Assembly: GCA_002104945.1 (NCBI GenBank)
Contig: MCFH01000001.1
Coordinates: 1,302,001-1,366,000, forward strand
Source of the DNA: Piromyces finnis finn
Taxonomy: Eukaryota; Fungi; Neocallimastigomycota
Direction: 5' to 3'
Length of the DNA: 64,000 nucleotides
A program made the position numbers and the translations under genes. Positions 2,104-12,168 of this stretch are shown piece by piece; within the stretch, counting starts at the first letter, position 1; the number at the start of each line of letters is the position of its first letter. Under the pieces are notes generated by a model, which was not told the origin of the DNA, ran no database searches, and saw only the letters and a program-made list of their open reading frames with translations.

Positions 2104-3126
2104 GAAAATAAAAATAATATAAAATGAATGTATTAATATATAAATTTACTTTTTAAATTTCATATTTAAATAAAATGCTTGAAAATTATTATTTAATTTC
2201 TTGCATTTTAAAATTTATTTTTAATTCAAATTTCTTTCTTTTTTTTCTATTATATTTATAATAAGTAATTCTATATTAAAACTAGTGTTTCATATATATT
2301 ATTGTTCCTATTACTGATTTTAAATATTTAATTTTGCTTTTGTTTTCTTTTTTATTATAGTTTTATGTGTAATTATGAAAAATTCTATTATTTAAAATTT
2401 GAGTAATCGTTAATGTAGTATTAATGTGAAAAAGTTAGAGAAAATTCATATATATGATATTAATTTCTTTTTCTTTTCTTTTTTATTGAGGTTGTTGTTA
2501 TTGTTATTATTAAAAGGTCTTGAGGGAAAATGAATAATATTTAAAAATACACTCCCTAATTCTTACATAACTCTTTAAAAAAAAATACATATTTTTCCTA
2601 ATTAAATTTTAAAAATATTTACTAGGAAAAATTAAATTCTAAAATTTTCAAAATATTCCCAATATTACCTTTGAACCTTATAAATATTATATATAAGAAT
2701 AAAAAGAAAAGAATATAGTAATCTTTTTAAACTATTAATAATTGACTTTTTCTTGTTAAAAATATAATGGAAACTTATTATTTGTTGTTATCTTTTAACG
2801 TTAATATATATTTCCTTTTAACTTTTTTATAATAATAATTTTAACATTTTTTTTTTTAATTATTTTAGTATATTAATTAAATTTTAATATAAATGTAAAA
2901 TACACTTTTTATAAATCTAAAATTTATAAAAAATGAAATAATAACCGCAAATAACATAAAATTACATTTCAAAAAATAAAAAATAAAATAATAGATTTTA
3001 AAATTTAAAAATTAAATATAGTTTTCAACAATTTATCAATAGCCAACAGAAAATCAAAAATTGTTATTATATTATAATTTAAATCTATAAAATAATATAT
3101 TTTTCAATTTTATTTTTTTAAAAAAA

Positions 3127-5027
3127 ATGGTAAAAAAAACAATATCTCGAACAATATTTATTCTTGATAGTCATCCTCTATGTAAAGAGCAATCCACACA
3201 ATGTACTTAAAATTTTATATTATGCACAATAATTATTAATTTTAATTTTAATTATTTAGAGGGAATAAAGATTAATTGTAATTTAAAAAAGATTATTAAA
3301 ATTTCAAATGTTATTAAATTTTGAAATTTCATTACATTTGAAATCTATTTAAATATACATTTGAAAATTTTTATTAATAATATATAACGAAATGTATATA
3401 TATGATATTAATAATAACAAAAAATTGATGTTATTTTTATATTCACTATATAATATATATATATACATTAAAAAAAATAATAAAATCTCATATATATTTT
3501 CATTTTTGTATCATACATTAATAATTCAATGAACAAATTAATTTGAATGTGAATTATTATAGTAGTAGTAGTAGTAGTAGTATTTTATTTTACTTTTTTT
3601 TTTATTTTTTATTTTTTTGACAATTTTAATTGATTGAATTTCATATGTTAATTTATTTATAGGTGATGAATATAGCAAGAATTTACCACAAAGATCCATT
3701 TGGTCTTGTTTTATAGAAAGTGTACATGAGTATTGTCGTATATTCTATGATTTATTTGATTGTTCAGATTCAATGGTAAATGCAAATAAGCTAATTTTCA
3801 ATTGAATAAATCAAATAATGTTAATAATATAATTTAAATATATTCATTTTATATTTATATATATTATTAAAAAACAGTTATCCATACATATATCAAATGG
3901 AACTTCAAATGACATAATAAATAATTGGAATGAAAATGAACAACAAGCAAAACAAGTTAATATTTTTATTTTAAAAACATAAATTTTTAAAATATTCAAT
4001 TATCTGAACTAATAAAAATAAAATTCTTTAAAATAATATTGATTTAATTATTTAATATTAAGATTAGTAAGGGTTTATTATCAATTAATCAAGAAAAAAA
4101 TGAATCAAAGAGAGATAGAATAAAAAATTCAGTGATTCAAGCACTTGAAAATTTATTAATTAATAATGAAAAATATGATAAAATAAATGGAAGAATTATA
4201 TTATTATTACTAGATAATTCAATTAAATTAAATGAAAATAATAATAAAAATACTAATAACATTTTTAGGTAAATATTCACGAAAATAAAATATGATTTAA
4301 AAAATATAATATATTGATTTTATATATAATTTTATATCAGTTATTATGAAAATAAAAATGACATCTATGATATAAGAGATATGCTGGTTTCTGCATGGGA
4401 AGAAAGTAAAAATAAAAATAGTATTTTAAACGATAAACTGGATGACTGTATATTTGATATTATCAAAGTTTCAGACTCAGATGATGAATATGTCAATAAT
4501 TATACCCAAGATACCTATTATTACCAAGTAATAATTATTTATAATAAAATTATTCTTTTTTGTTAATGTGTTACATATGTTATATGAAAACGATAATAAC
4601 AGTAATAATAATACTGATACATTAAATAAATAATAGGTTAACGATGAAATTATATTATCTGTATATCACTCACCAATACTGAAAATTTTAAATAGTATTC
4701 GTAATCTTATACAATTACAAAAAAATTTATATACCCTTACAATCTCTGATATACCAATAAAAGTAAAGATAATCATATTATTAATAATTGAAATATAAAT
4801 AAATCTTTTAAATGTTTGAATAAAAAATTACTATTATCTTACTTTTTCATATATATATTTTTAATAATGAATAAATAATAATAGATTGATTCAGAAAATA
4901 ATAATAGTTATTCAATAAGTTTATTATACACTGGAAATGGGCATATAGCAACTTCAAGTAAATTCAAAAATATATATTTTTAATAAAAATATTTTCATTT
5001 GAATAGTTTAATAAATTATAAATTAAT

Positions 5028-5062
<35 letters not shown>

Positions 5063-6338
5063 GAGACAAAAAAAGAATTTATGAAAGTAACTACTTTAGT
5101 AATAGAACAACATTTACAAAATGGAGATCAGTAAAACCAAAACTAAAAAGTACCTAATATATTTATTAATATTATAACATTATATTATAGTAAAATAAAT
5201 ACTATATAATAAATATTAAATTATTTTTTACTTTTTATTCTTTTTTTTTTTTTTAGATAATAATTCAACAATGTGCATTCATAAAATTACACCTATGGAC
5301 ATAAGTAATGATATAACAAATCTATTCATAAATGCTATATTAACTAATAGTAAGTTTTTTGAACTATATTTAATACTGATTGTATAAACTCTCAAATTAA
5401 TATATTTTTATTATATATATCCTTTTTTTTTAAAGATACCTTTTTCTATTTTGTGCCATGTGAAGAGAAATCAGTTTCATGGAATAAAGACCAACCAAAA
5501 ATATCACATATGATTTACTTTGACAAAGGGAATTTATTATTAGCATGTATTGATTCAATTAGACCTAATATTATAAATTTACCTGCACTTCCAAAAATAA
5601 AAGAAGTCTGTAAACTAAGTTGTGAAGTAAGTCTATTTCAAATAAATATTTTTTACTAATTATAAAATTAACTTTAACATTCTTTATAACAAAATACTAG
5701 GATTTCGAAGATATAATTGAATCATCCACCATAGATGTTAATGTTCCAATTAAATCTAATAAAGATATAGAATCTCTATTTTTCAAAAATAAAGAAGATG
5801 ATTATTTTATGTTTAAACCATATGAGCATGTATCTAATAATAGATTAAGAGAATTATCTTTTATTGAGAATCCAAAAGATTTTGAAATAAAGGTTCCAAA
5901 AATGATTAATAAATTATCAGTAACATTAAAATCAATTGATGAAAAATCACCAGTATATATTGGAGAAGTGGGTATACTATATAATCCATAATAATTATTT
6001 AAATCAATATTAATTTAATATTATTTTTTTAATATATAGCCTGCAAAACTATTAAAGCCATTTATAGATAATTATATAAATGAAGAATTAAATGAAAATA
6101 TTATGATATCTATTCGATCCGTAAGTTTATATTTTATATTAATATATAAAGAAAAGAAACTTTCTCAACTTTATAGTAGTTAGTTATTAAATAATATTCA
6201 AAGGTTACTTATTATAAATTTATGATTTTGTTAGGCCTTAAAAATCTTAACAATGTACTATAATGAAAATAACAAATCACTTTTCCCATCAATTTCAAAT
6301 AAATATAAAAGGTGAGCTAAATTATTATAGAAAGAACT

Positions 6339-6410
<72 letters not shown>

Positions 6411-7586
6411 TATTTTTGCTATTTTAAAATTATTAATATTATAATATTAATGTTGTTTTTATAGAAAAATATTATACGACATATTAATAAGAGACTTAAG
6501 ACAGATTGGTGAAAAATATAAAGATAATTCAGATTCCCATAAAACTGTAATGTATATGATTATGTTTATTAGACTAGTTTTTAATTCTAATTCTAATAGA
6601 ATCAATTTCCTATTTAAAAATACTAGATCTATAATTATATAGAAAAGCATTTTTGTCAAGATAATAATGATAGTAGTAATTCAGCATCAAGACCATCAAC
6701 ACCTTCTAAGTTTGATCAAGATACAGATGATTCTAGTATTTCAACAAAAAAAGGTATTAATCGACTTTCTAATAGTACTAATTCAAGAACAGTTGCTAAA
6801 AATTCAAGAAATATGAGAATTCAACCAGCTCAACCAGCTCAACCTCAATCCCGTTTACGTACAAGCAATGCAAACGCAAAACCTCCAATGAAAGAATCAG
6901 TAAAAATTATACCTTATTTAATTGTCAATAAGCCATCAGATGAAGAAATTCAAAATGATAAAGAAAGAAAAGATAATGGTAAAAAAGGATCTCTCTTTAA
7001 TTTATATTGGAATAATAAAAAAAATCAGCGTTCTATTCTTATGACTTATTTAAATAATGTTGGTAAGTTTTTATTAATAAAACACTATTTAAAAAAATAT
7101 GTATATTATAGTTTTATATATATATTTATTTGTTTTTTGTTTTATCAATATTAAAAAATAATAATACCATATACATAATATACATATATATTAATAAAAT
7201 TCCTTAAATAATATTATTTAGGTGGTTATGGATGGAAATTGGAAAATAGAGATGATTTTTATGGAAGAAATGGATTAAATCTTGATTTACTTAAAGAAGA
7301 TGACAATGGAAATTCTGGACAAGATAGTGGATCTTTGGATAACGCTAAATCCTCCTCTTCATTAAAAAGTAATCATAATATGAATTATTCAAATGATAAT
7401 ATGAATAGTAGTAATAGTACAAGTATGAATTCTAATAATCGTAATAATCATGGGTATAATCATGGTAATCATTTTCATAACAATAATAATATGAATAGTA
7501 GTAGTAATAGTAGTAGTATAATGAATTCACAAAAAGACGTAAATAATTCTACTATAAAGCATGCCAATAAAAAAGTTAAACTTTGA
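3127..7586 (+). CDS. INTS13: Integrator complex subunit 13 / Asunder homolog (vWA-Ku-like fold), multi-exon
   Basis: Spliced exons in consistent phase (exon1 3127-3202, exon2 3663-3775). They give SRTIFILDSHP, RSIWSCFIESVHEYCRIFYDLF, INNWNENEQ, NGRIILLL, TLTISDIPIK, KITPMDI, KISHMIYFDKGNLLL and C-terminal GSLFNLYW...DFYGR. These follow, in order, recalled human INTS13 motifs: [88 protein letters not shown]...EFAGR. Confidence 0.85.
6340..6410. repeat. (TTTA)n microsatellite inside an intron of the INTS13 homolog
   Basis: Direct reading of an uninterrupted TTTA run. Confidence 0.9.
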
Positions 7587-8050
7587 TATTCTAATAAAAA
7601 TTAATACACACATTCCCGGATTTAATAATATTAACTAATCACTAAAAAAAAAAAAAAAGAAAAGAAAAAAAGGAAATAATTCATAAAAAAAGTTATTATT
7701 TTTTTATATTTCAAAGAAGAAAAAAAAATAGTTTTTTTTATATAATTTTAATATGAAATCACAACAAAATAATTAAATATTTATTATTGTATTATAAAAT
7801 AAATAAATTTAAATAAAGACATAATAACATATTCACTATATATATGATAAAATATTTTAAGATATATTAGCATTAGCATCAATAATATTAAAACGATAAA
7901 AATATTAAGTTTAATTTTTTTTTTTTTTTTTTTTTTACAATTATTCCTATACATTATTCCTACATACGTATTTTTTTTTCATCATAAACACTAACTAAAT
8001 ATAAAAAAAAGACAAGATAAATAAATTTGATTAAATAATTTTTATTATTT

Positions 8051-8260: not shown

Positions 8261-9107
<847 letters not shown>

Positions 9108-10544: not shown

Positions 10545-12168
10545 CTATTTTCTATAAATATATATATTTCTTTGAAAACCTTTTGATTGGTTTGAACCTT
10601 TTCCCAATAATTCATAACTTTTAAAACCTACAGTTTCCATTAAATATTGATGAAATTGTTCAGGATATAATTGGATATTGTTAATGTTTGATAACATTTT
10701 CTAATATACAAATAGGTAAATTTATATTAAATATATAAAATAAAAAGATAAAATAGAACTTAGGAAAATAATTCATTTGAATGTTATAAAAAGGAATTAT
10801 ATATTTTACATATATATATATTTACTAATGATAAATTGTTACTCGAAAATAAACATATAATAAAATGAATTATATTACCTTATTATTCTTAGCCTTTCTG
10901 GAATAACCAGAAAATGGTTGAGGTTCTAAAATAAATATACCATTGTTTCTTAAAGAACTATATACTTTATTAAAAAAACGTTTAATACCATAGTCACCCC
11001 AATTTAAATGAATCCACTTCGTAATACTTAAACTAATTTTAATATTACAAATATAAAAAAAAAGTTTTAATAATATAAATAAAAATTTTATGAATAATTA
11101 TATATAACCTTTAAAAAAATAAAAATAAAAAAACTAAATATACCCTAATATAATATCATATGAGTCTTTGCTTTCCTCTATTGTTGGTTCATTTACCCAA
11201 TCGCTAACACGAAAATAAACATTGTTTGGAAATTGAGATTCCTTAATTGCCTCTATTTCATTATTATTATCATTTTCAATTACTATTTCTCTTATTTCAT
11301 TTTCTTTTTTTTCTTTTTCTTCCATAGTATTTTCAGTAAAATCACTTTCTTCTGGATTTTTTTTACATTTATTAATATTTATATCAAAATCGTTATATTC
11401 TTTTTCAATTTCCTTTTTTTTATTCTTCTCCAAATTATAATTATTAAGTGGTATGGGTATACTTCCTATAGTTAATGGGCAAGATATAGGATAATAATCA
11501 AAAAGTTTTTCATTTTCATTTAATTGAATATTTTGTTCTTTATTTTCTTTTATATCCTGATTTTTTATTAGTGAATTACGAAATATTAAATAATTTTGAG
11601 CTTTTTTAATCAAATGAGGATCAATGTCAACTCCTTCAATTATTTTTGGTTCAAAAAGCATTGCTTTTTAATTAATTTATTATTTATATATTACAAATTA
11701 GGATAGGATAGCAAAGGAATATTTTAAAAAAATAATAATTAAATAAAATAACCAACCTAGAGATACAGTTAAAAATCCTGAATTACATCCAACATCTAAA
11801 CATTTTTTATTATGAAACCATTCTTCATTAAATAGTTCAATACGAGGATCTATTGGAATAGAAGATTTATTTCTATACCCATAATAGTGTTCATAATTAC
11901 CGTAAATAAATTTATTACTCTTTATGAATTTCCCATTTAAAGAATTAGTCTTATTATTAACATTACTATTATAAGGGTGAAAGGAACCATTTGAAGAAAA
12001 TACTGACTTTGCTTTAAAAGACTTTGAGGAATTAATTACATCATTTCCTTTTGCATTAACATTTAAATGTATTCTATGAGATGAATTATTATTATAATTT
12101 CTATTATTGTTGTAATTATTATTGTTGTTGTTTAAATGTGCCAAATATGGATTAAATTGTGCTGACAT
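10545..12168 (-). CDS. BMC1: Bin3/MEPCE/Bmc1-family RNA 5' methylphosphate capping methyltransferase
   Basis: Exons encode YGNYEHYYGYR, DPRI, KKCLDVGCNSG, GVDID, FPNNVYF and the family hallmark LSITKWIHLNWGD, then FILEPQP. Stop TAG at 10545-10547. Confidence 0.9.

Follow-up and report, generated by a model that had tools for sequence, protein, structure and literature searches.

A likely INTS13 (Asunder) orthologue in Piromyces finnis, an early-branching fungus in which Integrator probably survives

Budding and fission yeast form the 3′ ends of their small nuclear RNAs (snRNAs) through Nrd1-Nab3-Sen1, Rnt1/Pac1, and the exosome. Papers on the Integrator complex, whose animal form comprises INTS1-15, describe it either as specific to metazoans or as missing from lower eukaryotes (PMC9006982, PMC7347597, bioRxiv 10.1101/2023.03.05.531184), and both of these yeasts lack it (PMC7347597). 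Two of its subunits, INTS13 and INTS14, share the VWA, β-barrel, and helical architecture of Ku; in the human complex, an LxPF loop of INTS13 clasps the linker of INTS14, and residues 649–694 of INTS13 form a motif that binds the cleavage module (PMC7347597); the docking site proposed for it in human is CTD1 of INTS9/11 (bioRxiv 10.1101/2024.01.30.577955). Here, we describe a gene at positions 3127–7586 of a 64,000-nucleotide stretch of the genome of Piromyces finnis, an anaerobic gut fungus of the phylum Neocallimastigomycota (contig MCFH01000001.1, positions 1,302,001 to 1,366,000 of the forward strand; the whole stretch is called the window, and positions are those of the window unless another sequence is named). 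The gene is expressed and constrained and is likely an orthologue of INTS13 (Asunder) that works in much the same way as in animals. This explanation draws together the structure of the gene, its expression, its conservation, an N-terminal signature, six other Integrator subunits encoded in the same genome, and an element shared by the downstream regions of snRNA genes. Literature searches on Integrator in early-diverging fungi found no paper.

Structure, expression, and constraint of the gene

A three-frame translation combined with splice sites revealed a 16-exon gene on the plus strand, with an ATG at 3127 and a stop codon at 7584–7586. A script joining the exons gave a coding sequence of 2541 nucleotides (nt), or 846 codons, in an unbroken frame whose sole stop is terminal, and all 15 introns have GT..AG ends. 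An earlier reading of this stretch, made from its letters only and referred to here as the preliminary description, had placed a multi-exon gene at 3127–7586; the 16-exon model and a spliced contig confirm that start and end exactly.

Transcript evidence came from four public runs (X1–X4, three studies, with the RNA type of the runs guessed) that were compared with positions 3000–7700, a comparison interrupted at some intronic microsatellites. Run X1 contains a single contig of 2718 letters that spans 3000–7622 and from which all 15 introns predicted by the model are removed. Thirteen of its joints are listed with GT..AG ends and fall exactly at the model boundaries, and the remaining introns 7 and 8, which adjoin skipped repeats, are supported by record arithmetic (exon 10 begins at record position 1184, as predicted) and confirmed by record 12 of run X4. 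Runs X2–X4 contain subsets of the X1 joints. A contig without the 15 introns must come from spliced RNA, and therefore the gene is transcribed and spliced as modelled. The check with RNA data proposed in the preliminary description thus upholds the spliced model: the gene is real and expressed, and its full spliced mRNA was already present in public transcript assemblies. Three microsatellites lie within introns, namely (ATTT)n at 6331–6405 in intron 13, (TAG)n at 3560–3582 in intron 1, and a 26-nt A-run at 5034–5059 in intron 7.

Queried with exon 10, an exhaustive phmmer search yielded two repeat proteins and a metagenome fragment of 51 residues, and nothing else. The fragment led to eight gut-metagenome contigs (L003–L010) from one related species that carry the orthologue of the gene. 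Global alignment revealed exons that are 80–90% identical between the two species, with gaps that are absent or multiples of three; the exception is the low-complexity tail of exon 16, where the gap count is not a multiple of three. The introns are 49–74% identical and contain many gaps, with splice sites kept. The ratio of nonsynonymous to synonymous substitution rates (dN/dS) is 0.10 over 464 codons in twelve exons of equal length, and the protein is under purifying selection. Orthologues at a greater distance were sought in two scans of metagenomes, of which the first returned none and the second one contig of 1558 nt. Exons 4 and 10 gave nothing informative in the ESM Atlas.

Identity of the protein and its C-terminal segment

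The spliced model was searched exon by exon, all 16 exons against Pfam and exons 1, 2, 6, 9, 10, 15, and 16 against PDB sequences. Exon 2 matches PF10221 (Mat89Bb, the INTS13/Asunder family) at profile positions 45–68 of 689 with a score of 24.5 bits and an E-value of 1.4e-5, which becomes ~2e-4 after correction for 16 exons; the score lies just below the 25-bit curated cut-off. Among PDB sequences, the five best matches of exon 2 are distinct chain sequences of human INTS13 (E 2.5e-6 to 3.5e-5); the sole other match listed, an unrelated mannosyltransferase, has an E-value of 6.8. A six-frame search of the whole genome (56 Mb; 56,455,805 bases in 232 contigs) identified the exon 2 locus as the sole PF10221 candidate. 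The matched element, SIWSCFIESVHEYCRIFYDLF at 3689–3760, is the N-terminal VWA-domain signature of INTS13 at its expected N-terminal position. It has in common with human INTS13 and Drosophila Asunder (PDB 6SN1, 8RBX) the signature S-x-W-x-C-x-x-E-S-x-x-EYCRI-x-YD-x-F at the same relative position. With respect to the Ku70-Ku80 pair, exon 2 matches INTS13, not Ku.

The remaining 15 exons have no Pfam match of their own, and exons 1, 6, 9, 10, 15, and 16, as well as two 33-residue C-terminal pieces, found no INTS13 match among the PDB sequences. Matches to Arp2/3, anthrax protective antigen, and xylanase in these searches were at chance level (E >0.5) and were rejected. The fungal protein is far more diverged than the human and Drosophila members, and only exon 2 is recognizable by itself. 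It contains Asn/Ser-rich insertions and, beyond the C-terminal segment, a low-complexity tail of ~90 residues, and its 846 residues fall in a size class near the 706 of human INTS13. Judged from its sequence, the gene product is very probably homologous to INTS13, a homology for which a single conserved N-terminal element, in a protein of fitting length, gives good support. The preliminary description had gone further and proposed motifs collinear with human INTS13 over the full length of the protein. The part of that proposal covered by exon 2 stands, with matches to both PF10221 and the human chains that support a fungal homologue of INTS13. The part covered by exon 1 (the supposed vWA strand) and by exons 6, 9, 10, 15, and 16 finds no counterpart when each is searched alone, and collinearity beyond exon 2 is a lead. 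The profile comparison with the Asunder family, also suggested there, divides in the same way between exon 2, close to its cut-off, and the other exons. The FKPY sequence encoded in exon 11, read by eye against the description of the human loop in PMC7347597, falls at the position expected for the LxPF loop and is a possible counterpart of it.

A candidate for the second landmark of INTS13, the cleavage-module-binding motif, is split by intron 15, with GSLFNLYWNNKKNQRSILMTYLNNV closing exon 15 and GYGWKLENRDDFYGRNGLNLDLL opening exon 16. Human and fungal proteins each have a conserved short segment near the C-terminus that follows a low-complexity linker. The fungal segment is nearly invariant between the two Piromyces-like species, whereas substitutions and indels are found in the linker and the tail on either side of it. 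Exons 15 and 16 and their 33-residue motif halves have no human INTS13 match in a PDB set that includes the full-length protein, and the PDB matches of the halves are at chance level or none. The preliminary description had the cleavage-module-binding motif retained; this claim gains no support from the PDB sequence searches, in which the fungal segment has no measurable similarity to the human motif. We read the C-terminal piece as a short segment that appears to be under functional constraint at the expected place; that it corresponds to the animal motif is unproven.

Other Integrator subunits and a candidate 3′ box

INTS11 is encoded by an open reading frame (ORF) on another contig, which scores 707 bits (E 8e-212) against human INTS11 versus 318 bits against CPSF73. 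Most of the protein is encoded by this one exon, and its first ~36 residues must sit on an upstream exon. The loci of CPSF73 and CPSF100 are separate from that of INTS11. Unlike animal INTS11, the Piromyces protein has a long low-complexity insertion, of several hundred residues, between the nuclease domain and an animal-like C-terminal end. Budding and fission yeast are also fungi and have the same substrates, but in Piromyces, INTS11 is unmistakable and coexists with CPSF73 and CPSF100.

Further subunits were recovered from four collinear exon matches for INTS2, six for INTS3, the C-terminal domain of INTS4, an 89-bit match to INTS7_N, and a 53-bit match to the INTS6 β-barrel with a VWA exon upstream. 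The INTS2, INTS3, INTS4_C, INTS7_N, and INTS6 barrel matches all lie above the Pfam curated cut-offs, and a match to INTS5_C is weak, at 21 bits. Relative to animal Integrator, INTS2, 3, 4, 6, 7, 11, and 13 are present in Piromyces. INTS13 is not an orphan subunit, because INTS11, INTS2, INTS3, INTS4, INTS6, and INTS7 are encoded in the same genome. This removes a worry raised in the preliminary description, whose proposal that the lineage keeps an animal-like Integrator is now supported for seven subunits when INTS13 is included.

INTS1, 9, 10, and 14 were not found in the six-frame search, which is insensitive to short exons. For INTS9, searches with Beta-Casp, Lactamase_B_6, IntS9_C, and the INTS11 protein revealed no fourth locus; the IntS14 barrel and C-terminal models, the INT10 model, the INTS1 RPB2-binding domain, and INTS4_8HBD likewise had no six-frame match. 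The search for partner subunits proposed in the preliminary description thus recovered INTS11 and INTS4 and left INTS9, INTS14, and INTS10 without a match at this sensitivity. The six-frame search finds INTS13 itself by one exon only, and such blanks are therefore not evidence of absence. Two sets of candidates were rejected. The VWA_2 candidates considered for INTS14, which were those in small exons, are Rpn10, TFIIH p44, and the INTS6 VWA domain, and the sole genome match to IntS11_C (G000:C189:790556-790795, L002) is weak and lies inside an Argonaute/Piwi-like ORF, making it a false positive. We conclude that Integrator probably survives in Piromyces finnis; the complex looks largely retained, and INTS13 looks like a much-diverged member of its family.

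Small nuclear and nucleolar RNA genes were located with Rfam models, and loci of the RNA polymerase II (Pol II) type were counted at ≥80 bits. We found two U1 loci, five U2 loci and one weak copy, one U4, three U5, three U3, and two U6 loci; the snRNA and U3 loci (L038–L042, L044–L049, and L052–L054) all lie outside the window, where an Rfam scan found no RNA family. The element [TG]AAT[TG]TRAAAA (core TTAATTTRAAAAT) lies 13–29 nt past the modelled 3′ end at all U1, U2, U4, U5, and U3 loci of at least 80 bits. Its exact form TAATTTRAAAA is present at 8 of 9 independent U1/U2/U4/U5 loci (binomial P ~4e-20) and has a background rate of 6.3e-5 per nt in ~205 kb of genome. The window contains eight copies, versus 11 in shuffles. 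Both U6 genes, which are transcribed by RNA polymerase III (Pol III), lack the element and end in a T-run, and the weak U2 copy has no downstream element. A search for 3′ boxes near snRNA genes, another suggestion of the preliminary description, was thus productive: a 3′-box-like element follows all the counted Pol II snRNA genes and neither U6 gene.

The vertebrate 3′ box reads GTTTN0-3AAARNNAGA (quoted in PMC7347597). The fungal element, A/T-rich and with a TTT-then-AAA core, is alike in form and position to the first half of this box, but TTAATTTRAAAAT lacks the AGA half. By its sequence, the downstream element is a candidate fungal 3′ box, and by analogy with animals, Integrator may read it. 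The 5′ sides of the genes are also regular: all U1, U2, U4, and U5 genes have an upstream TATAAATA-like TATA box whose position is fixed at −37 to −45. The U3 TATA box is at −38 in two of three loci, with none at U3a, and an ATCATYCA-like element is found near −82 upstream of some snRNA genes. Three identical U2 genes are arranged in tandem with a 923-bp period (G000:C146:599794-601833).

The features of the INTS13 gene and the coordinates of two other subunits are collected in Table 1. An Atg4-like protease gene (Peptidase_C54, 90–1514) lies upstream of INTS13, and genes for an Arf GTPase (8261–9101) and a Bin3/MePCE-like methyltransferase (10545–12168) lie downstream. All three are on the minus strand, and their order is also kept on the metagenome contigs that carry the orthologue.

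Table 1 Coordinates of the INTS13 gene model in the window and of the INTS11 and INTS4 matches elsewhere in the genome.
Feature	Position	Strand	Evidence or remark
Transcribed region (mRNA)	3000..7631	+	Spliced contigs, runs X1–X4; 5′ end at or before 2986, 3′ end near 7622–7631
Exon 1, start codon (MVKKTISRTIFILDSHP...)	3127..3202	+	Model; joint 3202>3663 in X1 and X2
Exon 2, INTS13 signature SIWSCFIESVHEYCRIFYDLF at 3689–3760	3663..3775	+	PF10221 and human INTS13 chain matches
Exon 3	3878..3955	+	Model, spliced contigs, orthologue alignment
Exon 4	4063..4268	+	Model, spliced contigs, orthologue alignment
Exon 5	4341..4527	+	Model, spliced contigs, orthologue alignment
Exon 6	4637..4762	+	Model, spliced contigs, orthologue alignment
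Exon 7	4885..4957	+	Model; record arithmetic on X1 record 1, X4 record 12
Exon 8	5060..5149	+	Model; X4 record 12
Exon 9	5257..5349	+	Model, spliced contigs
Exon 10	5436..5626	+	Model, spliced contigs; 57/63 residues identical in orthologue
Exon 11, FKPY at 5812–5823	5701..5967	+	Model, spliced contigs
Exon 12	6040..6120	+	Model, spliced contigs
Exon 13	6235..6311	+	Model, spliced contigs
Exon 14	6465..6546	+	Model, spliced contigs
Exon 15: low-complexity linker, then first half of C-terminal segment (GSLFNLYWNN..., 6987–7062)	6627..7062	+	Model, spliced contigs
Exon 16: second half of C-terminal segment (GYGWKLENRDDFYGRNGLNLDLL, 7222–7310), Asn/Ser-rich tail, stop	7222..7586	+	Model, spliced contigs, orthologue
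INTS11	G000:C200:531398-534706 = L015:2399-5707	-	1102-codon single-exon ORF
INTS4	G000:C167:191221-191442	-	INTS4_C 44.7 bits (cut-off 27)

Function, alternatives, and evolutionary meaning

By analogy with animals, INTS13 would pair with INTS14 within the Ku-like arm of the complex, which the C-terminal segment of INTS13 would tether to the INTS4-INTS9-INTS11 cleavage module. Nascent Pol II transcripts, for example snRNA precursors, would then be cut by INTS11 downstream of the 3′ box. We infer the full-length fold, the pairing with INTS14, the C-terminal docking, and the use of the element as an Integrator signal. Several results weigh against this proposal. The INTS13 identity rests on exon 2, which scores just short of the Pfam cut-off, the other 15 exons being silent in that scan. 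The C-terminal exons and motif halves do not match human INTS13, and INTS1, INTS9, INTS10, and INTS14 were not found by the six-frame searches.

The silence of 15 of the 16 exons and the sub-threshold Pfam score are also what would be expected of an unrelated protein, specific to this lineage, whose 24-residue motif came to resemble that of INTS13 by chance or convergence. This is very unlikely given the specificity of exon 2, whose five best PDB matches are all INTS13 before the E-value rises to 6.8, and a Pfam E-value that stays at ~2e-4 after correction. The motif also lies in the right place of a right-size protein, and further Integrator subunits are present in the genome. That the gene is instead foreign DNA, a contaminant or a recent transfer from an animal host, is suggested by the life of the organism in animal guts and by a family best known from animals, but its probability is close to nil. 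Its GC content of ~17% matches the rest of the window, it has 15 short AT-rich introns inside a contig of >2.5 Mb, the Atg4-like, Arf, and Bin3-like genes also flank its orthologue on contigs of a related gut fungus, and its similarity to human INTS13 is only distant. The composition, short AT-rich introns, and conserved neighbours thus mark the gene as fungal and not as contamination.

A different question is whether a true INTS13 descendant still serves in Integrator. The protein could have left the complex and persisted in a different capacity, for example by binding nucleic acids or in the cell-cycle and dynein-related functions formerly attributed to Asunder; its docking motif would then have been lost or replaced. 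The C-terminal segment without detectable similarity to human INTS13, the divergence outside exon 2, and the failure of the six-frame searches to find the partner INTS14 and the scaffold INTS10 all favor such a departure, which we nevertheless judge to be unlikely. The cleavage-module subunits INTS4 and INTS11 are present together with the core subunits INTS2, INTS3, INTS6, and INTS7; the C-terminal segment is the best conserved part of a fast-changing tail, which suggests that a binding function persists; and the searches that missed INTS14 and INTS10 nearly missed INTS13 too. An INTS13 orthologue acting within Integrator is thus the reading we prefer.

A broader proposal extends this reading to a whole animal-type snRNA system in an early-branching fungus, comprising fixed promoter elements, a near-complete Integrator cleaving at TTAATTTRAAAAT, and an INTS13 arm that docks through a diverged, lineage-specific C-terminal motif. 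We give this full system an even chance of being correct. An expressed INTS13, INTS11, five further subunits, and the shared downstream element suggest machinery that is older than animals and later disappeared within fungi. If this is true, Integrator-dependent snRNA 3′ processing would be at least as old as the ancestor shared by animals and fungi, with a loss inside the fungi rather than an invention in animals. The candidate 3′ box provides a concrete signal that makes this function testable, and an RNAi protocol is available for a related gut fungus (PMC5796279). For the INTS13 family, the diverged fungal sequences would mark the indispensable parts of the protein, namely the exon 2 signature and perhaps the short C-terminal segment.

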